NCBI GenBank assembly: GCA_009103225.1
Contig: RHPI01003053.1
Span: forward strand, 1-25,717
DNA length: 25,717 bases
Direction: 5' to 3'
DNA from: Chlorokybus atmophyticus
Lineage: Eukaryota; Plantae; Mesostigma and Chlorokybus algae
The notes under the pieces are model-generated. The model was not told the DNA's origin. It saw nothing but the letters and a program-made list of their open reading frames with translations, and made no database searches. The position numbers were made by a program, and so were the translations under genes. Shown piece after piece: positions 2,638 to 25,717 of the stretch; within the stretch, counting starts at the first letter, position 1; every line of letters starts with the position of its first letter.

Positions 2638-4250
2638 ATGGCCTCTCGATGGCGTTGTGCTCCGCAAGTCTTTGCGCTGCTGTGGACGCTCCTGTGCGTG
2701 CTGCTGTTGTCGCTGCCGGTCACATCAGCTGCAGTCTGTGGCAACGACAACTGTATATGCAACTGCAACAACCTCTGCAACCGTGTCTCCCTATATTGTG
2801 GCTGCACAGGCGATTGTCCCAAACCGACACAAGACTGTGTAGGCGGGGGTTGCGGCGTCAATTGCATGCCTGGCAACGGCATGTGCACTTCATCCGGAGG
2901 CGCACTCCCCTGCACCTGCACCGCCTCCCACGGCGACCCTCACCTCACTGGCTTCCAGGGGCAGCGCTTTGACTTTCAGGGCGTCCGGGGCCTCCCGCAA
3001 TCGAACTACGCCTTTCTATACGACCCAACCTCCCGCATCTGGGTCGGCGTCACGCTCGTCTCCAGGCCCCTTCAACAAGCTGCAGATGGTAGCCCCTTGT
3101 GGGTGACCGTCATCCAAGCCATTGGCGTCTCTGTGCCTGCTGCAGCTGCCATTGGAAACAACTCCGCTGGCACCTTCAAGCGCGACCACCACATCATCAT
3201 CCGGGTATGTATGTCCGGGCAGCTGCATGCAACACTGTGCCGCTCTCGCTGTGCATGCACATGCACCTGCGCTGTTCTGTGTTCTCACAGCCACCGACAT
3301 GGCAGGTAGGCGCGACTGCCTCTGCTGCTGAGGGCCACGACAGTCTTTTGGTGGCCGAGTTTGAAGATGGCACGCGTATAGACTCCTCAGTTAAAACTGC
3401 CGACTATGAACTCATCCGTCTGGAGGTGCGAGCGTGCACGTGTTGTTTGCAAACTGTTATGTTGTCACTGTGTGCTGACGCCAGCTGAGTTTCCTTGACA
3501 GGACAAAGTTGTTGCCATTAAGTTTGTGAACATTGCTTTCTCCGTCGTGGCGAGTCTCGCAGCCCGGCGCACGTCACCATACCTGAACTTGGGCTTCCAA
3601 GGACCAGGGTAAGTTCTCCCCCTGTCTTGCTATCTATCAACACTCTTGTACTGCAACGCTGTTGGCTTTTCTCTCTGCATATCCTAGCCCATGCTGAACT
3701 CGGCTCTCAATTGCCCTCGCAGCTTGTCTCAGCACACTCATGGCGTCATGGGTGAGTGCAAACGGCCTTGGATGACCTCGAACTGTTGTTAGTAGTGGTC
3801 ATCATGTGCACATGCTGCCCCTTGTGTGATGGTATGATGCTGTTGAAAGTATTGGATGTATCCCTGATCCGTGGCATTTGTATGCAGGTCAAACAGTCCA
3901 CACCTGGTACAATGCAAGTGGCAGTGAAGAGTATGGACATGCGTATGGTCCGAATGGTCACTTCAGTGGCAAACCCTCTGATTACAGTACGTACCTTGCA
4001 TTCGTCATAACTATTTTGCATGCATGAATGTACTGTAACGTTAACTTTGCTGCAGCAGTCAATGATATGTGCATGTTCTGCAGTGATCAAGCACTTGTTC
4101 GATGTGGATTCGTTTGAACAACACCTTCCGGAGCTTGAGTTGGAAGAATCTGTCAAGAACAAGTACGTAGCGAAAGACAAGTACGCTGGGGTTGCACACC
4201 ATCCCGCCGATGTTGATGCTAACAAGGAAGGTGCTCGTGATGATGAGTGA
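2638..4250 (+). CDS. Secreted Cys-rich root-cap/LEA-related (VWD-like) protein, 367 aa; join(2638..3204,3291..3425,3502..3608,3723..3751,3888..3986,4084..4250)
   Basis: All five introns are GT..AG with matching phases (0,0,2,1,1). Exons total 1104 nt and stay in frame to TGA at 4248-4250. The protein has a hydrophobic signal-peptide-like N-terminus (VFALLWTLLCVLLLSLPVTSA), a Cys-rich segment, then GDPHLTGFQGQRFDFQG and C-terminal THGVMGQT...DY..KHLF, motifs typical of plant/algal root-cap-type proteins. Confidence 0.8.
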
Positions 4251-4636
4251 CCAGCATTTTCTGCTTCAAGCATACGTGAGTAGTGTGTTGAGCACAATGT
4301 AGTGCATGTTGTAGCATGCTAGGTGGGGATCTTCCTTACGAAATAGATATCGGAAGATAGTACTGTGAAACCTTCGCGCAGCAGCTGCAACACCCTTGTA
4401 CATATACACATGCATCCCACCCATACTTGCAGACATAGCCTTGAACACGGCTTTGCCAAGACTCCCAGTCAGTTTGTAGTTGAACTGACTGTGTGTATAT
4501 TGCTACTCTAACACGTGTTTCTCACCGATGCATGCCTCAACCGGCATGATATATGTGCATGGTACTTTGGTCTGCGTGCACATGTATCTTTGTGCATGCA
4601 TGTATTGTCTCTGCATGGTTTTGCCCGCTGGCGGGC

Positions 4637-4832
<196 letters not shown>

Positions 4833-8258: not shown

Positions 8259-8259
8259 A

Positions 8260-10230
8260 ACAAGAAGGAGCGGGTGGTGTCATACGCTAGCCGGAGCAAT
8301 AACAGCGCCGAGGCCAACTACAGCATCTTCGAGGGCGAGTGCCTCGCTGCAGTATGGGTCATCTCCTTCTTTCGGCCCTTCCTCTTCCGCCGACATTTTC
8401 AGTTGATTATTAACTATCAGCCACTCAAGTGGTTGATGAGTAACCAGCACTTGATAGGCAAACTTGCCCAATGGGCACTGTTGCTATAGGCATACGACTT
8501 TGAAATTGATCATCGCGCTGGCATCACCAATCAAGACTCCAATGGGCTTAGCTGTACCCCCCACCTCAGCACTGACCAACGATGCAACGGGAGCTCGACA
8601 CGAGCTCGGTCGCGCAATTGTAGCCCCTACAATGGCTGCCATGTTTGCTGTCCCGCGCTGCGCTCGGGGCGCAAGACCAACACCGCTGCTACAGTCAACG
8701 TAGAGGAGATACCTGCCTCTGAGCCAACCAGCTCTGCAGAAAACGCAAGAGACGCTCGCGTCGTCGACGCCAAGATCGATGACACAGAGCTGGCACTCAC
8801 GGACATCAGATAGTACATATGGCTGGACAATCCATCATTCTCTTTCCTGCAAAGTGGCATAAGTGCGCGCGAGAAGGATCGCGTTAACCAGCGCATGCAG
8901 CAATTCCGGTGGGCAGATGACAAGCTGTATCGTCGTCTTCATGGTGAAGACAAATAAGTGCCTACACAAGCGACACGTGAAGGCATCATTGCTGCCCTCC
9001 ACACCGAGTTGAGACATTTCGGTGTCAAACGGACAGTCAGTCTGGTGTGAGCACAATATTAGTGGCATCGGTTGTACAAGCAAGTGCAGGTATATGTGAG
9101 CCGCTGCCAACAGTGTGACATGGTGCGCGCCAGCCTTGACGCACGCAGCGCCACTCCGCACTCTCTCCCCATCTTCGGCCTCTTCTATCGATGGGGGCTC
9201 GACATCTTAGGAGACTTGTCACCTTTGGCACGCGGCAAACGTTATATCCTTGTGATGATTGAGCACTTCTTTAAACGGGCGGAGTTGATGCCATTGCCTG
9301 GCAATAGCGGGAGGGGGGTGTTTCAAGCCTTCATCTCCCACGTCCTCAGCCGGTTTGGCAGCTGCGCTGAGGTTATCACCGACCAAGGCACTGAGTTCAG
9401 AGGGGAGTTTTACACCCTCTTGGACAGATGCTACATCGACCATTGCCGTACCTCACGTGACCACCCTCAAGCCGATGGCCTCGCCGAGCATACAGTGCAG
9501 ACAATCAAGAAGGCACTCCGCATGTACGTGCTTGAGTATGAGGAAAACACCTGGGATGACCACCTCCCGTGGGTGGCTCTTGGGTATCAACTGTCAAAGC
9601 AAGCAGCACTGCGCGAGTACAACCTATATTATTTGATGTTCGGGCGACAGCCATCGCTTCCCTGCCATGCACAGCAGGAGGTAAATCGAGTGGTGAACAA
9701 CCTCAATGACCCCAATTGGATGCACCACGACATTACAACGCGTGCGGCTCTGTTTGAGCGCACCATCCCAATGGCTTTCAACAACTTGCGCATCGCGCAG
9801 CACGGTAACACGCTGCCCTACGAGGGCGTGCGCAGTAGTGATGTCCATAAGGACCGACAGCGTTGGCTCCAGGCAGGAGACTTTGTCTACCGCATGGAAG
9901 CCACCCACGACACACTTGAGACCTCTGTTGGCGAACTGTTTACAAGGTACTGAAACCACAGATGTTCTGGACCTCCTCGGCCAAAATAGCCAAAGGTTGA
10001 AGGACAACATGGTGAACTGCGCGCCCTATCACCCTATACATAGCTGGGTCCGTGCATATCACCCTCGCCCCACGCGAAGCACACACTGTGAGCGCTGTGG
10101 CAGTGCCGACGACGACCCATAAATAATGCTCTGCGATAACTGCAACAAAGGGCTGCACTACTATTGTTTGGAGCCCCCAATAGATGCAGTGCCCATGGAG
10201 GAGTATTGGTGCGGTGACTACCGCGCCAAC
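8260..10230 (+). pseudogene. Decayed Ty3/Gypsy pol fragment (RNase H - integrase - PHD), same clade as the intact minus-strand element
   Basis: RH: VVSYASRSNNSAEANYSIFEGECLAAVW...KWLM. IN zinc finger: LHTELRHFGVKRT...CQQCD. IN core: WGLDILGDL / ITDQGTEF / HPQADGLAE. PHD remnant at 10087-10221: CERC...MLCDNC....LHYYCLEPP...W.CGDY. In-frame stops at 8487, 8811, 8955, 9048, 9060 and 10120, and a frameshift near 9945. Confidence 0.95.
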
Positions 10231-10296
10231 GGACCTCCACACTTGCGTTATGAGCTCATCTCTAAAGCTTGGACCTCCTAGAAGCTAAAAGGGGGG

Positions 10297-10671
10297 NNNN
10301 NNNNNNNNNNNNNNNNNNNNNNNNNNNNNNNNNNNNNNNNNNNNNNNNNNNNNNNNNNNNNNNNNNNNNNNNNNNNNNNNNNNNNNNNNNNNNNNNNNNN
10401 NNNNNNNNNNNNNNNNNNNNNNNNNNNNNNNNNNNNNNNNNNNNNNNNNNNNNNNNNNNNNNNNNNNNNNNNNNNNNNNNNNNNNNNNNNNNNNNNNNNN
10501 NNNNNNNNNNNNNNNNNNNNNNNNNNNNNNNNNNNNNNNNNNNNNNNNNNNNNNNNNNNNNNNNNNNNNNNNNNNNNNNNNNNNNNNNNNNNNNNNNNNN
10601 NNNNNNNNNNNNNNNNNNNNNNNNNNNNNNNNNNNNNNNNNNNNNNNNNNNNNNNNNNNNNNNNNNNNNNN
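10297..10671. other. Scaffold gap (375 N) flanked by G runs
   Basis: N run with GGGGGG on the left and G12 on the right. Confidence 0.99.

Positions 10672-14258: not shown

Positions 14259-14347
<89 letters not shown>
14259..14347. repeat. (AG)n microsatellite, about 44 units
   Basis: Pure AG run ending at a single N (14348). Confidence 0.97.
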
Positions 14348-15412
14348 NGCCTTCCTGTGCGTGTCCGCATGCGCAAGCATGCGCACGCGGACACGCACAG
14401 GCAGTCATCCTCACACCCAACCATGCCAAGCTAAGCAGGCCTACCTGGAAGTTGAGCGGGGTGGTCTTCGCCACCATCCCCTCTGTGTCATTCCCACCAT
14501 CAGCTCGTTTCCGAACACTCATGCGCGTGCACAATAATACACGCAACACATCGGAGTGACTCGCACAGCGACGCACGCACTTGCACACGTTGGTCAAGAA
14601 TACGAATGCGCACGCACGCACGCTCATACGCGTGCGCACACACAATTGTTGTACCTTGAAGGTGGTGGAGGGCAGGACAGCGGGGCCGGGGTAGTGCTTG
14701 CCCACGCGAAGCCGTGCACTAACAACTCGTTCTCTCTTTTAGCAGCGGACTGTTGTTGATCGCACCTTGCGGGAGGGCATGCAGTCCGGGAAACTGCATG
14801 CGCGCGTGCGGGTGTGAGCATGCGCATGCCCGCATGCTTGTGCGTGTGCGTGGCTTGTTGAGAAAGGGGGGGAGGGGGGGGTGGGGGGTAAACCTGTTTA
14901 CATGCATAGTGTACACGCCGAGCTGTCTCATGGGCTGCACCAGTCAGTGCAGTCTATGAGCCGCCTATAGCAACTGCCTCATAGGCTGCACTGTCCAGTG
15001 CCGCACTGTCCAGTGCAGCCTATCATGATGAGGCAGTCACTTAGCCTATGAGGCAGTCTGACCGGTTGCTTGGGCTGATCAACCACGGCGGTCTATCAGC
15101 CCATTATCAACAAGTGTGTGTTAATGTGTATGTGTGTAACAAAGAGCACATGTGTAGTATGCGTGTGTGCGCATGTCTCCCCCCCCGCCCCGTTCCTCCT
15201 CACACCCCTCCGCTCACCTTGAGGTCCAGCAAATGCATTTGATTGCAGCGCCCCCCGCTACCGGGGGCTCTAAGAAGAGCAGCAGCATCGGGCTCCCCGC
15301 CAACACTGTTGGCTGGCAGCCACGTCCCGGATCACATGTGCAGACATGTGCGAAAAGAATTGTGTGTGCAGTTGCATAGTCACGCCTGCACACGCCTAAG
15401 CACAGATGCACG

Positions 15413-19251: not shown

Positions 19252-19411
19252 TGTCGTGCCTTCCCGCATCGTGACTCGAACTCATCGTAAACCTCCTTGC
19301 CATGCATGTACGCATGCTATTATACACCATGAGACCATGTCATGCTGCCTCATGCACCATCTCTCAACACATGAAGCTGACACACGCATGACAGATGCGT
19401 GTCCCCTTGCA
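19252..19411 (-). repeat. Duplicate of the PPT/LTR-start block at 20185-20349
   Basis: 152-bp core (19252-19403 vs 20185-20336, offset 933) with 3 mismatches seen. Similarity continues into a PPT copy with a 5-bp deletion. Confidence 0.9.
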
Positions 19412-19538
19412 AAAGGTAGGCAAGTAGACCACAACTTGACTTGCAATCAGCCGTTCACTTATGTAAAGCAGTCCCAACTCAATCCTCACTCAAAGTACAT
19501 GCTAAGGCAGCCCATACGGTGCATCAAAGTCGCAACAG

Positions 19539-20337
19539 TGACACACACCCCTTCATGCACAGCAACGCACAGCAACGAACACGTGCACACACGCCATACA
19601 TGCAAGCATGTGCACACGCATCCGCTCAGCCAAGAACCTCTTCCCAAAGGTGTTGCTTGCACTCCAGTAGGCCAACTTGCATCCAACCAAACTAGGAAAC
19701 AGGCTAGCAAAGCCTTATATACCACCGTTGAGCTCAAGCCCAACCAACTCTCCAACTACCCTAACTGTCAATCTGCACCAGCATAGTAACAGTCATGGTG
19801 GCGTTGATAAGTAACGGTAAACAGTTAGGAAAGGCTTATCCAAGCTCATCCTCTTCAAGTACACTTCAAGACGCATCTTTTGACGCCAACCCATGGCCAA
19901 ACCGCCACTCCAACTGTAAGTTACGGCTTCTCAAAGTCACAACTCCGAAACAGCTGTGCGAGATACCATAGTGACCCAAATATGCTGTCAGCTCCGTATC
20001 TGACTGTAGATACGCCTCGAACACACCTCCCTCACGTCCATGAGGACCCAAACATGAGTTCCCAATGAAAACCCAACACATAAACCCTGTAAAATGGCTA
20101 TGAGAGCCAAAATCCCAAGGTCCATCCATGTCGCCAGCCCCGAGGGCATCATGCACATGACACTACATGCTCGCGCATGACAGCTGTCGTGCCTTCCCGC
20201 ATCGTGACTCGAACTCATCGTAAACCTCCTTGCCATGCATGTACGCATGCTATTATACACCATGAGACCATGTCATGCTGCCTCATGCACCATCTCTCAT
20301 CACATGAAGTTGACACACGCATGAAAGATGCGTGTCA
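19539..20337 (-). mobile_element. 3' LTR of the intact Gypsy element (start well supported, end tentative)
   Basis: On the minus strand TGACACGC begins at 20337, directly after the PPT and 60 bp past the pol stop. TATATAA at 19721-19715. Candidate end GTGTCA at 19544-19539 would form a terminal inverted repeat. The 5' LTR lies outside the window. Confidence 0.6.
19715..19721 (-). promoter_or_regulatory. TATA box in the candidate LTR U3
   Basis: Minus strand GGTATATAAGG, within the candidate LTR. Confidence 0.4.
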
Positions 20338-20346
20338 CCACCCCCT
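20338..20346 (-). other. Polypurine tract
   Basis: AGGGGGTGG on the minus strand, immediately 5' of the TG LTR start. Confidence 0.7.
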
Positions 20347-20396: not shown

Positions 20397-23300
20397 TCAA
20401 GTCCTCGTACACGCTGGACAATACCATGTCCCATCAGGGATCTCCTCAACTGGTGGACGAAGGCACTCCATGTGCCAACCGGCAACACACCCGTCGCACA
20501 GCAGCATGGTGTCCCAGCCTTCCGCTCGGCCACACCGCTCACAACGGTGGCCCACATCTGGTATTGCCAGAGCCGGATCCACGCTGTCATCCACGTTTGG
20601 CAGATGGCAAGGAGCGCAGCTCTTCATGTGCTCCTTAGTGGTCCTGGCATCAGCTCCCTCTAACAACAACACACCGTTGTTGAGAAGCTTCTTCACACGA
20701 AGGATGGTGCGGCTCGCACTCGTATCCAACGTGTCCTTGGTCTTTCTCTGCAGGTAGACAAAGTCTCCGGGCTGAAACTTCTGCAGTCTTGGCTTGTAGA
20801 AGCCACTCCTCACCCTGGCATAGCGCAGCGTGTCGCGGTGTTGTGCCACTTGCAAGTTGCCAAGTGCAATCGGCATCACACACCGGAACAGCTCCGCACG
20901 CTTTGCCATCTCCTTCTCCCACACATTGGGATCCTCCAAGTCAAGCTCCTGCTCAACCTGTCTCCGGATTGATGTTGGCAATATGGGCTCTCTCCCATAC
21001 AACAAAAAATAGGGGCTGTATGAGCTCAACGCAGCCTGCCGCGTCATGCGATAGCCCATTGCCAACCATGGCAACGCCAAGTCCCAGTCTCTCTTGTTGT
21101 GGTTGAGACAGTACTTGCGAAGCCCTTTCTTCACCACCTGTACCATTCGCTCAGCAAGCCCATCGGCTTGAGGATGGTCACGAGAAGTCCTTCGATGGTC
21201 GATAAAGGCTTGCGCCAACAAGTCATCGAACTGGCCACGAAACTCGGTGCCTTGGTCAGTGAGAACCTCAGCACAAGCACCGAATCTGCTAAGGACTTGA
21301 TCAAGGAAAGCTTCAGCCACAATCTTGCTCTCCTTCGATGGCAGCGCCACGACCTCGACCCACTTGGAGAAGTGCTCTATCATCACGAGCACGTAGCGGT
21401 TGCCTCTCTTGCTGACTGGTAGATCTCCGGCCAGGTCTAGGCTCCACCGATAGAAAAGTCCTTGAATAGGTAGAGGGTGCAGCTGTGGGTGCTTGGCATT
21501 GAAGCTTGCCTTCACTCTGTCGCACTCCACACAGCTTGCAACAACTTCCGCCACGGTAGACTTCATGCCAGCCCACCAATATGCTGATTGCACGAGCCCA
21601 AGTGTCCTCTTGACACCAAAGTGGCCCATCCTCTCATGAAGCAGCTCCACAAGCGGCTTCCTCTCATGTGGTTGAGGCACAATCCTCACACCTCCATCCG
21701 GCATCAAGCGCACAAGGTGGTTTCCCTCCCATCGATAGCGTTGCGCGCGTTGCCACACGCGATCTCGCGTCGCCGTGCTGCAACCAGCTTGGAACAGCCC
21801 GGTTTTGAGGTGAGCAAGCACTTGCTCATCCCTCCAAATGTCCTTTGAAGCCTCGGCTTCCTCCCCTTCAATGTCATTGACCGTTGGGGCTGGTGCAGCC
21901 TCCAAAGGCGGCATTACACCATTGTTGTCGCTATCTCCAGCTGCGTTTGCGCGCATGGATGCGCATGCTTCCACCGAACCCGCCAACACCAGCAAAGAAG
22001 CCACACGGTAGGCCAAAAACCCAGCCACGGGCATGCCATAGTCATGCCTCGCCTCACTCTCATCCAACGATGAAGGGTTTGGGTTCCTACTCAGCCCATC
22101 CGCGTCCATGTTGTCAACACCAGCTCGGTGCTCAATCTCAAACTCATACTCTTGCAGTATGAGCGCCCACCTGGCATGCTTCCCCGTGAGCTTGTCATTG
22201 GTCATCAACCACTTCAAGGGCTGGTGGTCGGTGATGAGTGTGAAGGGACGGCCATAGAGGAACGGTCTGAAGTGAACTATGGCCCAAACTACTGCCAAAC
22301 ACTCCCCCTCATAGGAGCTGTAGTTTGCCTCAGCGTTATTGTTGCTTCGGCTGCCATACGCGACCACATACTCCTTCCCATCATCATCCTTTTGACACAA
22401 CACGGCCCCAATGCCCAAACGGCTCCAATCCGTGTGTAGGATGAAGGGACGGTTGTAGTCCGCCCGTCTCAACACCGGCGCGGTGCATAGCTTCTCCTTG
22501 AGAAGCTCAAAGGCACGTTGGCACTCCTCCGACCAGCACCAGGCCTTGTCCTTCTTCAACAACTCATTTAAGGGCTTTGCAATCTTGCTATACCCCTCCA
22601 CGAACCTCCGATAGTAGTTCGCCAAGCCGAGAAACGCTCGAAGCCGGCTAATGTCCGTCGGTGCGGGCACTTGCACCAAGGCATCCACCTTTGCTTGCTG
22701 CACACGGACGCCATCCGGCACTATCTCATGGCCGAGATACGGGATGCGATCAGCTCCAAACAAGCACTTCTCCGGGTGACACCTCATGCCGCTCTCGCGC
22801 ACGCGCTCGAACACGCGCTCCAAGTGCACGAGATGCTCCTCCATCGTGTGGCTAAACACCAAGATGTCATCTATGTAGCACCTTGCGAAGGGTAGACCAC
22901 GAAGCACACGGTCCATCACACGCTGAAACTTCACAGGCGCATTCTTCAAGCCGAACGGCATGACCTTCCATTGGTAGAGCTGGTCCACTCCCCAAAACGC
23001 TGTCTTGCCACGATCCTCGGGCTTGATGGCGATCTGGTTGAAGCCCTGCCTCAAGTCCACGATGGAGAACACCTTTGCATCACCGATGTCATCAAAGATA
23101 GCCTCAGGGATAGGCATGGGGTACCGATCAGCCTTGGTCTTCTCATTGAGAGGCCGATAGTCACCACACATCCTTCTCGAGGTCCAGTTTCCTTGTGCAT
23201 CTTTCTTCAACGGCAACACCGTCGCCGCCGCGAAGTCCGAGGTTGACTCCTCAATGAGTCCGGCCTCCAACAAGTCAGCACACTTTTCTGCCACAAACTC

Positions 23301-25717
23301 CTTCTCCACCTTGCTCAGCCGATACTGCCGACGAAAGATGGGCTCTGGAGAGGTCAACTCAATGTCCATTGTGTAGAAGTTGCAAACTCCCAACTCCTTG
23401 GTAGAGTAGGCGAAGCAGTCACGCTTGCGCGCCAGCAAAGCCTCGAGCCACTCACGCTCATGTGGTGTCACATGCTCGCCTATACACCACTCCATGGTCT
23501 GGTCGGTGGCCTTTTCCTGCTTCAAGGCACCATCTACAGCCGCTTTCTTGCCACTTGCAGCTGTCACAGGCGAAAAAGACACCCCCTTACTCTCCTCATC
23601 ATGTACAACCTGCTCCCACCCCCTCGACAGAGGCGCAGGCTCCCGACGCGCTTGCTGTCGCATCGGCATGATGCTTGCCACCAACTCTTGTGCCGCCAAG
23701 CAGACAACCATCAGCCACACCATGCTGTTCTGGTCCATGGCTTGTCCTAGCAGCACACGGCGCTGTTGTTCACTTAGTCCCGGCGCCGCTGTCGCACCGG
23801 ACAAGAACCCCATCGCACGCTCGCGCTCACCAGCTGTTGGCTCTTCCAACCTGCTGTTCTGTGAGTCCCACACCAGCCCTGGCCCTCCCTTGCGGAATGC
23901 ATAAGAGCCTGGGTATGTCACCAATGTCGGCAGCGCCGCCATGTCGTGCCCGACCTGGTTCACCACCTCTTGAGGCGGCTGATCAGCCTTGCTGACCTGT
24001 TGTGCTGTGCGCCCATGCTCCAGCACCTGGTTGACTGTAAAACCTTGCGGTCTAGAGTACTCTTGCTGCACCGTGCGAAGCAACTCAACCGGCGCGAGGT
24101 TTGTCCACTTCACACGCAGCCGATGCGCGCGCGAACCATGCCGTGCTGCATCCATGACCAGCTCATGGCCTAGCACATGTCTCACCAGCTGATAGTCTTC
24201 TCGCACGCGCTTGCGCTTGTCATCTTCAGCTGGTACATTCTCGACGATGTACGCCATGGGCTGCTCTTGTCCTTGCTGAATCCTGTTGATGATGCGCACT
24301 AACTCCCAAAACAATGACGAGCGCGCATCCATCAATCCTTTGCCATGACCAGCCCGTGAATGCCCTTGGCATTCCCACCCGGCTACAAGCAAATGCACAT
24401 GGCCGATAGCTGCAAGTTGATGTGGCCCTATCAAGCAAATGTCTTGCGGCCATGTGCTTTGAAAGCCCTTCACCGCATCCTCATGTAGCAGATCTGGATA
24501 CTTCAACAACATCCTCACATGATGTTGTGCACCTTGTTGTGCCGTTGGCGAAGGGTCCACATAGATATAGCGCCGCAGCTTGATGCCGGCGTTCAACGCG
24601 GCCGCAAGCCCACTTGCAATGCCACCGAACAGCTCCACCATCACAACACCCTCCTCGGGGACCTTCCACTCGACGGTGCTGTAGTTGATAGGCGGATGAA
24701 CAGCTCTCACACCCTCGGGCAGCAATGGCGGCTCCAATGCCATCACATCCTTCATCCATGCTTGGCTAACCTTGTCTTGAGCCTCTTGTTGCCGCTGAGC
24801 ACGATGTTGTGAAGCCAACTCCAGCTCTTGTGACTGAGTTTGCGCCATATAGACCAGCTCCGGAGGTCTCCCCTCCTCCATGTGTGCGAGGACACTCTCC
24901 CCCTCCTCCACATGGTCATAGTACATGTCGGTGCTGTCACCAAGCCATCCCTTGACTGAACGGCGACTCAAGCACGCCCACACAGCAGATGCAGAGGTTG
25001 GAGACCTCTCAAGACCCCCTTGTGTGATGCTCAACGGAAAATAGGCCTTCTCCCCTCCACCCACACGCCAACGCGGCCGAAAGAACCCTTGTTCGATCCA
25101 ATTGTCAACGCCGCCGCCGACGGGGAACAAGAAGTCTTGTCCGAGCAGCACATCGTACCCCTTTGCATCCGTGATGAGGCATCGAACCTTGAAGGACGTG
25201 GTAGCACCTCCCACCGCAGTCAAGCATATGTCCACCGGCTGCACCGTTATGCCGCACACGGCCTCTACGGTCCCCGCCGAGGTATTGATCATGACCGGGC
25301 ATGGCTCCCACTCCTTGGGGCTGAGTCCCATCCCCTTGACAGCTCTAGCACCCAAAATGACAGGTTGTGCACCTGTATCCACCAAGACAACATCTGGCAC
25401 GAAGCCGTCTAGGCTGATGTGCCCCCCACGGTTGTCCACCATCGCCACATTCGGCGATATCTTCTCTCTCAAGGCCGGCCGAGTGGCGGGAAGCATTGCC
25501 AACATCCCTCCTACACTCCCCACACCTTCCTCCAGCTTGTCTTCAAGCTGAGTGAGAGAACTCGACGCCGACGCGGACCCCTCGGGCGCCGCCAGCTCCG
25601 CGCGCGCAACCATACGGCCTGCTTGCGCCACCATATCTTCATGAGACTTGCTCATATGGTCATGAGACTTTGTCGAGGCAGTCCTAGTGGTGTCTAGAGC
25701 ACTTTGCAACAGCTCCA
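20397..25717 (-). CDS. pol: Ty3/Gypsy polyprotein (5'-truncated by the window edge): PR - C5 DNA methyltransferase - RT - RNase H - IN - PHD
   Basis: At least 1772 codons without a stop. The ORF-track start is an internal TTG and the frame stays open to the window edge. Gypsy domain order (RT-RH before IN); all catalytic motifs are readable. Confidence 0.97.
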   Translation of the reverse strand, partial: ELLQSALDTTRTASTKSHDHMSKSHEDMVAQAGRMVARAELAAPEGSASASSSLTQLEDKLEEGVGSVGGMLAMLPATRPALREKISPNVAMVDNRGGHISLDGFVPDVVLVDTGAQPVILGARAVKGMGLSPKEWEPCPVMINTSAGTVEAVCGITVQPVDICLTAVGGATTSFKVRCLITDAKGYDVLLGQDFLFPVGGGVDNWIEQGFFRPRWRVGGGEKAYFPLSITQGGLERSPTSASAVWACLSRRSVKGWLGDSTDMYYDHVEEGESVLAHMEEGRPPELVYMAQTQSQELELASQHRAQRQQEAQDKVSQAWMKDVMALEPPLLPEGVRAVHPPINYSTVEWKVPEEGVVMVELFGGIASGLAAALNAGIKLRRYIYVDPSPTAQQGAQHHVRMLLKYPDLLHEDAVKGFQSTWPQDICLIGPHQLAAIGHVHLLVAGWECQGHSRAGHGKGLMDARSSLFWELVRIINRIQQGQEQPMAYIVENVPAEDDKRKRVREDYQLVRHVLGHELVMDAARHGSRAHRLRVKWTNLAPVELLRTVQQEYSRPQGFTVNQVLEHGRTAQQVSKADQPPQEVVNQVGHDMAALPTLVTYPGSYAFRKGGPGLVWDSQNSRLEEPTAGERERAMGFLSGATAAPGLSEQQRRVLLGQAMDQNSMVWLMVVCLAAQELVASIMPMRQQARREPAPLSRGWEQVVHDEESKGVSFSPVTAASGKKAAVDGALKQEKATDQTMEWCIGEHVTPHEREWLEALLARKRDCFAYSTKELGVCNFYTMDIELTSPEPIFRRQYRLSKVEKEFVAEKCADLLEAGLIEESTSDFAAATVLPLKKDAQGNWTSRRMCGDYRPLNEKTKADRYPMPIPEAIFDDIGDAKVFSIVDLRQGFNQIAIKPEDRGKTAFWGVDQLYQWKVMPFGLKNAPVKFQRVMDRVLRGLPFARCYIDDILVFSHTMEEHLVHLERVFERVRESGMRCHPEKCLFGADRIPYLGHEIVPDGVRVQQAKVDALVQVPAPTDISRLRAFLGLANYYRRFVEGYSKIAKPLNELLKKDKAWCWSEECQRAFELLKEKLCTAPVLRRADYNRPFILHTDWSRLGIGAVLCQKDDDGKEYVVAYGSRSNNNAEANYSSYEGECLAVVWAIVHFRPFLYGRPFTLITDHQPLKWLMTNDKLTGKHARWALILQEYEFEIEHRAGVDNMDADGLSRNPNPSSLDESEARHDYGMPVAGFLAYRVASLLVLAGSVEACASMRANAAGDSDNNGVMPPLEAAPAPTVNDIEGEEAEASKDIWRDEQVLAHLKTGLFQAGCSTATRDRVWQRAQRYRWEGNHLVRLMPDGGVRIVPQPHERKPLVELLHERMGHFGVKRTLGLVQSAYWWAGMKSTVAEVVASCVECDRVKASFNAKHPQLHPLPIQGLFYRWSLDLAGDLPVSKRGNRYVLVMIEHFSKWVEVVALPSKESKIVAEAFLDQVLSRFGACAEVLTDQGTEFRGQFDDLLAQAFIDHRRTSRDHPQADGLAERMVQVVKKGLRKYCLNHNKRDWDLALPWLAMGYRMTRQAALSSYSPYFLLYGREPILPTSIRRQVEQELDLEDPNVWEKEMAKRAELFRCVMPIALGNLQVAQHRDTLRYARVRSGFYKPRLQKFQPGDFVYLQRKTKDTLDTSASRTILRVKKLLNNGVLLLEGADARTTKEHMKSCAPCHLPNVDDSVDPALAIPDVGHRCERCGRAEGWDTMLLCDGCVAGWHMECLRPPVEEIPDGTWYCPACTRT
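20409..20543 (-). other. PHD finger (C4HC3) at the integrase C-terminus
   Basis: CERC-x11-CDGC-x4-HMEC-x14-CPAC with LLC and PP....P.G.W.C signatures. Confidence 0.95.
20750..21640 (-). other. Integrase (HHCC zinc finger and DDE core)
   Basis: H..GH...CVEC (21638-21522), D in WSLDLAG (21437-21435), D in TDQGTEF (21257-21255), E in GLAERM (21152-21150). C-terminal FQPGDFVYL. Confidence 0.97.
22085..22450 (-). other. RNase H domain
   Basis: LHTDWS (D at 22430-22428), YEGECLAVVWA, ITDHQPL, DADGLSR. Confidence 0.96.
22480..23350 (-). other. Reverse transcriptase domain
   Basis: RMCGDYRPLN, DLRQGFNQI, MPFGLKNAP, YIDD (22877-22866), LRAFLGLANYYRRF. Confidence 0.98.
23710..24650 (-). other. C5 cytosine DNA methyltransferase domain, DNMT3-like, in frame within pol
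   Basis: Motif I VELFGGIASG (24638-24609), IV AGWECQGHS (Cys 24371-24369), VI YIVENV (ENV 24242-24234), VIII RAHRLRVKWTNL (24131-24099), IX ERERAMGF (23828-23805), X RRVLLGQAM (23762-23736), in canonical order. Confidence 0.93.
25120..25410 (-). other. Retroviral-type aspartic protease domain
   Basis: VLVDTGAQ (DTG at 25379-25371) and C-terminal DVLLGQDFL. Confidence 0.9.

Follow-up and report, generated by a model that had tools for sequence, protein, structure and literature searches.

Why would a retrotransposon carry a cytosine methyltransferase of its own? In plants and algae cytosine methylation is the main means of silencing transposons, and a transposon equipped with its own de novo methylase is therefore counter-intuitive, a point already made in 2018 for Klebsormidium and Symbiodinium (PMC5890265). 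The same question is raised by a stretch of 25,717 nucleotides from the alga Chlorokybus atmophyticus (GenBank assembly GCA_009103225.1, contig RHPI01003053.1), referred to below as the window. Chlorokybus belongs to the Chlorokybophyceae, within the Streptophyta. The right-hand part of the window is the pol region and 3' end of a Ty3/Gypsy-type retrotransposon of the same kind as KnitGypsy-Dnmt3 of Klebsormidium, and its Pol includes a DNMT3-like C5 cytosine methyltransferase domain (DNMT). It is proposed here, with a probability of roughly 0.55, that this domain is an active DNA methyltransferase that methylates the element's own new DNA around integration, while a PHD finger on the integrase tethers the complex to histone H3 tails.

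The coding part of the element consists of the following features, in which residue numbers are those of the pol open reading frame (ORF).

20397 to 25717, minus strand: partial pol ORF, running off the right end of the window; free of stops over at least 1772 codons, with its stop codon at 20399-20397.
25128 to 25388, minus strand: retropepsin-type aspartic protease, residues 110-196, with the active-site VDTGA at 25382-25368 (PF13975/PF13650).
23676 to 24698, minus strand: DNMT3-type C5 cytosine methyltransferase domain, given as the modelled segment, residues 340-680 (PF00145, PDB matches, AlphaFold, Foldseek and motifs).
About 23712 to 24653, minus strand: core of the methyltransferase motifs, from motif coordinates, with the catalytic Cys at 24371-24369.
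22722 to 23186, minus strand: reverse transcriptase (RT) core, residues 844-998, with YIDD at 22877-22866 (PF00078, RVT_1).
22146 to 22535, minus strand: RNase H domain, residues 1061-1190 (PF17917/PF17919).
21171 to 21671, minus strand: integrase, with an H2C2 zinc finger (residues 1349-1403) and the DDE core rve (residues 1422-1515) (PF17921, PF00665, PF09337).
20409 to 20543, minus strand: PHD finger fused to the C-terminus of the integrase, residues 1725-1769 (PF00628, E 5e-9).

Pfam, applied to the whole ORF, gives the order aspartic protease, C5 methyltransferase, RT, RNase H, integrase and PHD; RT-like sequence starts near residue 745, ahead of the RVT_1 match. The marks of a Ty3/Gypsy pol are all present, namely the order protease-RT-RNase H-integrase, the YxDD box of the RT (YIDD) and an integrase with zinc finger and DDE core. 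An earlier account of this DNA, made from the letters alone and called the sequence-only reading below, had placed the methyltransferase in frame between protease and RT in a stop-free pol and had described the element as looking intact. The single frame of 1772 codons agrees with the former and, within the visible part of the element, the lack of any break in frame agrees with the latter. The ORF leaves the window on the right, and gag, the primer-binding site and the 5' repeat fall outside the view. An open frame of such length, together with domain matches of such strength, cannot be chance.

Six motifs of C5 methyltransferases were found in the domain, at the places and in the canonical, not DRM-permuted order that the sequence-only reading had given, which also applies to the catalytic Cys.

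24635-24609, minus strand: motif I, ELFGGIASG.
24383-24357, minus strand: motif IV, AGWECQGHS, which contains the catalytic Cys (24371-24369).
24248-24231, minus strand: motif VI, IVENVP.
24128-24096, minus strand: motif VIII, AHRLRVKWTNL.
23828-23805, minus strand: motif IX, ERERAMGF.
23762-23739, minus strand: motif X, RRVLLGQA.

The Pfam profile PF00145 (DNA_methylase), proposed at the outset as a check on the domain, matched ORF residues 425-500 (E 6e-9; 36.2 bits against a cut-off of 22) in an alignment that covers profile positions 49-117 only. HMMER aligned three blocks collinear with DNMT3A, and the motif order is therefore unpermuted, unlike that of DRM. When the single domain was compared with all PDB sequences, DNMT3A was the best match (E 4.5e-8), followed by DNMT3C and DNMT3B, and the bacterial enzyme M.HhaI came far behind. 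A family profile built from the window domain and 39 relatives ranked DNMT3A first as well (1.7e-24, 89.8 bits), ahead of plant DRM (2e-14, 56 bits), M.HhaI (1e-9, 41 bits) and, among the lower ranks, DNMT2 (about 3e-4, 23 bits); DNMT1 was not among the matches listed. The AlphaFold2 model calculated from that family alignment reached a predicted local distance difference test (pLDDT) value of 95.5 and a predicted template modelling score (pTM) of 0.93. In a Foldseek search of the PDB with this model the best 50 matches were all catalytic domains of DNMT3A/B/C, the best of them DNMT3A with DNA (E 3.4e-20), with a TM-score of ~0.8 normalised to the target. Single sequence, family profile and predicted fold all support the original description of the domain as DNMT3-like, an affinity that is a ranking among solved structures and not a phylogeny. 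The PWWP and ADD reader domains of animal DNMT3 were not found in the ORF by Pfam; DNMT3 accessory domains have been reported as not conserved across eukaryotes.

Relatives of the domain are many. When 1.84 billion cluster representatives were searched exhaustively with HMMER, 1751 matched at E<=1e-3, 259 of them at E<=1e-30, and the highest identity of any database protein to the window domain was ~52%. Close copies of the domain were also sought in metagenome contigs of the Joint Genome Institute (JGI), and none was found. The named hosts are Marchantia polymorpha, several Closterium strains, Klebsormidium nitens, Haematococcus lacustris and Monoraphidium neglectum, and relatives were also found on many environmental and metagenome contigs. 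The K. nitens relative (P0310, annotated as 'putative retrotransposon protein') matched with an E-value of 9e-27 and ~41% identity over the part covered. Two proteins, P0257 and P0113, are filed under bacterial metagenome bins (Candidatus Obscuribacterales and Minisyncoccia) and look like mis-binned eukaryotic retrotransposon fragments.

Among 214 full-length relatives, whose domains share 35-50% identity overall, the residues of the active site have been retained. The catalytic Cys, the motif VI Glu and both Arg residues of the motif VIII RxR show shares that read 1.00, with a single exception each at the catalytic Cys and at the second RxR Arg; the Asn of motif VI is retained in 98%, and the conserved motif I Gly (the second Gly of FGGIASG in the window) in all or nearly all. 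That the catalytic residues have persisted throughout the family speaks for a role of the enzyme in the life cycle of the element. One position of the active site varies. C5 methyltransferases have a nearly universal Pro before the catalytic Cys, and residue 448 of the window ORF (24374-24372, minus strand), which occupies this place in motif IV, is Glu. The 214 relatives carry Glu in 58% and Pro in 35% of cases, and as both residues occur in both sub-clades of the family (described below), the Glu is a family trait and not a sign of decay of the window copy.

Relatives with the same arrangement of domains as the window (class A below) share with it 45% identity in DNMT, 51% in RT, 63% in RNase H, 58% in integrase and 36% in protease. 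The value for DNMT is similar to that for RT, so that conservation of the domain is about on a par with that of the core replication enzymes. The liverwort Marchantia holds young DNMT-bearing Gypsy copies (L004 and L006), the repeats of which are 96-100% identical. Two Marchantia copies with DNMT domains 98.1% identical gave a ratio of non-synonymous to synonymous changes (dN/dS) of 0.16 over 335 codons; in one of them the DNMT domain is interrupted by a single stop. Purifying selection acting on this domain, with Ka/Ks <0.2, has been described for the K. nitens copies (PMC5890265). The claim of the sequence-only reading that the domain is under selection thus finds indirect support, in the catalytic residues of the 214 relatives, the RT-like level of identity and the Marchantia dN/dS, all of them taken from relatives in other genomes.

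For a census of architectures the six domains of the window were mapped onto all fetched proteins (P0001-P0314). Of the 130 proteins in which DNMT and RT are both seen, 24 have DNMT ahead of RT, and the other 106 have it after RT and RNase H but before the integrase. The protease, where seen, precedes DNMT (44/44). Two classes can be distinguished in this way. Class A, with the order protease-DNMT-RT (n=56), comprises streptophyte elements, including those of the window, Marchantia and Closterium; class B, with the order RNase H-DNMT-integrase (n=126, plus 32 probable members), includes those of the chlorophytes Haematococcus and Monoraphidium. Clustering of the element sequences by identity matrices and average linkage gave DNMT clusters that follow class: one held 43 members of class A and 0 of class B, the other 145 of class B and 1 of class A. 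The RT, RNase H and integrase sequences split along the same line. The K. nitens locus (L007, DF238371.1) shows protease, DNMT, RT and RNase H in class A order, as in the window; its DNMT match is spread over two frames, and the contig stops before the integrase.

The PHD finger is shared widely as well. It is present in 111 of the 143 relatives having both DNMT and integrase and is therefore a trait of the clade; the suggestion that the window copy had added it to a known design does not hold. The nearest solved relatives of the window PHD are those of CHD4, ATXR5, BAZ2B, KDM5A, AIRE and PHF21A. The PHD fingers of these six proteins read the unmodified H3 tail.

Not all members of the family keep their domains in one ORF. 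Twenty-eight of the proteins combine a lack of RT with a DNMT that begins past residue 500, and 26 of these 28 end no more than 167 residues after it. In a young Marchantia copy (L004, gene Mp_4g09160) the first ORF closes soon after DNMT and is followed by an RT-integrase ORF in the same frame. With a stop of this type DNMT would be made together with gag and protease, whereas RT would depend on read-through. Unlike such relatives, the window pol has no stop after DNMT.

The 3' end of the element is visible in the window and is made up as follows.

20341 to 20345, minus strand: G-run of five, resembling a polypurine tract, directly upstream of repeat B1; the same arrangement is found in three relatives.
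20185 to 20339, minus strand: repeat B1, ~155 nt, ending in ...GCACGACA and followed by GC (20184-20183).
19407 to 20182, minus strand: putative repeat A2, ~776 nt, beginning with TGTCATGCG, assigned by analogy with the relatives L004, L005 and L006.
19252 to 19406, minus strand: repeat B2, the 3' terminus of the element, ending in ...GCACGACA.

Past B2 the flank is unrelated, AT-richer DNA, the first letters of which are TAAG (from 19251). Between B1 and B2 there are 4 differences in ~155 positions and 0 in the last 115; A2 opens with TG and B2 closes with CA. The layout can be followed in full in two Marchantia copies and one Closterium copy (L004, L005 and L006), which read A1, internal region, G-run, B1, GC, A2 and B2. 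In all three, A starts with TGTC and 4-bp target-site duplications flank the element. B ends with GACA in both Marchantia copies, and B2 of the Closterium copy now reads ...GCGATA. The terminal sequences TGTCATG... and ...GCACGACA are common to Chlorokybus and Marchantia. By analogy with these copies the partner repeat A1 of the window element would sit beyond the right end of the window. The B1-GC-A2 joint inside the element has the look of a right end fused to a left end. At the class B locus of Haematococcus (L003) no terminal repeats were detected at the settings used, and a further locus (L001), assembled in tandem or as a circle with an 8262-nt period, is uninformative on ends.

The element had first been called a long terminal repeat (LTR) retrotransposon. 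The Ty3/Gypsy-type pol fits that name; the visible 3' end departs from a plain LTR in having the split direct repeat B1-GC-A2-B2, as in the three relatives. A similar layout of repeats is known from the DIRS order. However, Pfam detected no tyrosine recombinase in the ORF and a DDE integrase instead, which places the element outside that order (PAT-like, Ngaro). A literature search on Gypsy elements with split direct repeats gave, among titles and abstracts, none on integrase-bearing ones.

What would the element gain from a methyltransferase? In the mechanism favoured here the DNMT domain would be produced within Pol as an active S-adenosylmethionine-dependent cytosine-5 DNA methyltransferase, and would for that reason be present where RT and integrase work. 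It would methylate newly made DNA of the element at about the time of integration, and the integrase-PHD fusion would hold the complex at histone H3 tails. The likely benefit is that a new copy would arrive marked like host-methylated DNA, which could serve self-limitation or allow escape from host action on unmarked incoming DNA. Self-marking is a reading already proposed for the known elements, as self-methylation of the cDNA of DNMT-bearing retrotransposons (PMC5890265).

Several points weigh against this proposal. The Gypsy DNMT of K. nitens gave no methylation in a yeast assay, a result that its authors judged inconclusive; this is the sole published activity test of the closest known domain (PMC5890265), and no Gypsy-borne DNMT3 is known to be active. 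The Glu in place of the near-universal Pro ahead of the catalytic Cys may affect catalysis, and the substrate may be cDNA, integrated DNA, host DNA or RNA. Release of the DNMT domain by the protease would be a guess, as no cleavage sites are known. Many first ORFs of class A end after DNMT, and the dosage of DNMT relative to RT may accordingly differ between lineages. The observed/expected ratio of CpG is 0.74 in the element and 0.76-0.85 in its flanks; the element is like its flanks in this respect and has no special methylation footprint in its sequence, which makes this measure uninformative.

A wider proposal can be put forward tentatively, and it is doubtful as a whole. The elements would form an old Viridiplantae clade of integrase-bearing Gypsy elements, undescribed as such, with two sister lineages, one with the order protease-DNMT-RT in Chlorokybus, Klebsormidium, Closterium and Marchantia, and one with the order RNase H-DNMT-integrase in chlorophytes. 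Both would have the PHD, and at least the first would have split direct repeats. DNMT and PHD would cooperate, the element inserting into chromatin read by the PHD and being methylated on arrival. Hosts reported to lack DRM and Pol IV/V, of which Chlorokybus is one, could in addition obtain a de novo activity of DNMT3 type from such elements.

An alternative that we consider unlikely is that the enzyme is active mainly in trans on DNA of the host or of foreign origin, with host genes, competing elements or incoming DNA viruses as targets, and that it is kept for the reshaping of host methylation or a benefit to the host. Effects on the host epigenome have been discussed for the Symbiodinium elements (PMC5890265), and defence against DNA viruses has been proposed for transposon-borne methylases (PMC6338049). 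The family is persistent across the Viridiplantae, and in Chlorokybus, given the reported lack of DRM and Pol IV/V, an element-borne enzyme of DNMT3 type could matter to the host. However, the domain was always found within pol and never as a separate gene with its own expression signals, hence it would be made only when the element is expressed. Moreover, K. nitens carries such elements and has an ordinary plant-like methylome (PMC5890265).

Somewhat less likely still is that the domain no longer methylates DNA and has become a structural or DNA-binding module, like the non-catalytic DNMT3L, or an enzyme directed at RNA. The Glu in the place of Pro in the Pro-Cys dipeptide would fit a loss of catalysis, but Glu and Pro alternate within both clades, and a module of this sort would not need the Cys, the motif VI Glu, the RxR Arg residues and the motif I Gly that all or nearly all of the 214 relatives have kept. 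The failure of the K. nitens domain in yeast points in the same direction as the Glu, yet human DNMT3B likewise failed in the same assay (PMC5890265). RNA methylation has been raised as a possibility for DNMTs borne by LINE elements (PMC5890265); the fold and the best matches of the window domain are those of the DNA enzymes DNMT3A/B/C and not of the tRNA enzyme DNMT2. That the locus is an artefact, either a chimera of the assembly or a host DNMT3 gene that a retrotransposon adjoins or interrupts, deserves almost no credence. The window does have an assembly gap of 379 N and other transposon debris, but that gap is ~10 kb distant, one uninterrupted frame spans protease, DNMT, RT, RNase H, integrase and PHD, and this reading is ruled out by the recurrence of the order in genomes independent of each other, namely those of K. 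nitens, Marchantia and Closterium and many metagenome contigs.

The remainder of the window holds other features. A fragment of a different Gypsy element, covering the end of an RNase H, an integrase and the beginning of a PHD, occupies 8259-10212 on the plus strand and shares 44% identity with the focal pol. Since the match runs over two frames, there must be at least one frameshift; everything upstream is missing, there is no DNMT region, and the fragment adjoins the assembly gap. A search for a second copy of the DNMT-bearing element within the window returned none, only this fragment. Pfam, applied to ten other ORFs of the window, gave that integrase fragment as the sole match, and an Rfam scan of the window gave zero matches. 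The gap itself (379 N) lies within about 10290-10670 and is followed by low-GC (32-39%) DNA up to about 13 kb.

A host gene is found near the left end. The ORF 2638-3306 (plus strand) contains 109 residues 100% identical to the EukProt entry jgi/Chlat1/1718/Chrsp129S01964, and all 281 residues of this gene, Chrsp129S01964, map to 2881-4247 (plus strand) in five pieces. Chlat1 is the JGI portal name for C. atmophyticus; this gene, together with the ceiling of ~52% identity for the DNMT domain, led to rejection of the idea that the window is K. nitens DNA, in which case the element would have been known already. A Cys-rich stretch resembling a signal peptide is located in the same ORF just 5' of the annotated start; the mapped part has a GDPH motif, and the gene matches no Pfam family. 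Long GA/CT dinucleotide microsatellites are present at 4634-4774 and 14259-14351, on opposite strands and 9.5 kb apart. Between 15589 and 16745 there are five copies of a ~43-nt palindromic unit (CTGGCTCATAGGCCGCACTG...CAGTGCGGCCTATGAGCCAG) within 219-nt direct repeats, and these units may represent a hairpin-forming miniature element.

The closest known system is KnitGypsy-Dnmt3 of K. nitens. The sequence-only reading had named DNMT-bearing retrotransposons from de Mendoza et al. 2018 as a precedent, correctly (PMC5890265). Like the window element, KnitGypsy-Dnmt3 has an unpermuted, intron-less domain of Dnmt3 type inside a Gypsy-type Pol ORF in a streptophyte alga, and the DNMT domains of the K. 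nitens elements were placed in a divergent Dnmt3 clade; according to a figure legend, its repeats are DIRS-like and not plain LTRs, while its domains are like those of Gypsy (PMC5890265). The order protease-DNMT-RT-RNase H is shared too. The hosts differ, being a member of the Klebsormidiophyceae in one case and of the Chlorokybophyceae in the other, and identity to the K. nitens protein is only ~41%, so that the window element belongs to a different family of the same kind. A literature search on Chlorokybus combined with DNMT3 or retrotransposon methylases found no paper on this element.

Class B relatives in H. lacustris and M. neglectum have a homologous DNMT (~40% identity), RT, integrase and C-terminal PHD in common with the window; unlike the window, they have DNMT between RNase H and integrase, and their DNMT sequences cluster apart. 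No description of class B elements was found in the literature. SymbioDIRS-Dnmt3 of Symbiodinium is a further retrotransposon with a DNMT3-type domain in Pol, for which self-methylation of cDNA has been proposed, and the DNMT3 domains of these DIRS elements showed de novo CG methylation in yeast. It differs from the window element in belonging to the DIRS order, in having a tyrosine recombinase, in the kingdom of its host and in an independent acquisition of the domain (PMC5890265). The catalytic domains of animal DNMT3A/3B/3C are the best matches of the window domain in sequence, profile and fold and share its motif order and short VIII-IX region, at ~20% identity; the window domain differs in the lack of PWWP/ADD, in the Glu for Pro and in its place inside a polyprotein.

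In their ends the elements resemble PAT-like and Ngaro elements, which have the same split direct repeats (A1, internal region, B1, A2, B2) and use a tyrosine recombinase (PMC4157794), whereas this clade has a DDE integrase, and its relatives show TG...CA termini and 4-bp duplications. In the fusion of a chromatin reader to the C-terminus of the integrase, presumably steering integration, they resemble the chromoviruses, another group of Gypsy elements, in which that position is taken by a chromodomain; the reader of the window is a PHD finger, with a preference for histone marks that is predicted only. Elements of the DNMT-bearing Gypsy kind were thus already described in 2018, from Klebsormidium, and the window adds a member in a new host, one of the earliest-branching streptophyte algae. 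The family extends far beyond the two published hosts, to a liverwort, desmids, chlorophytes and many environmental contigs, its DNMT occupies two positions in pol, its integrase-PHD fusion is constant, and its termini are unusual. Its breadth, the two DNMT positions and the termini may go beyond published knowledge.

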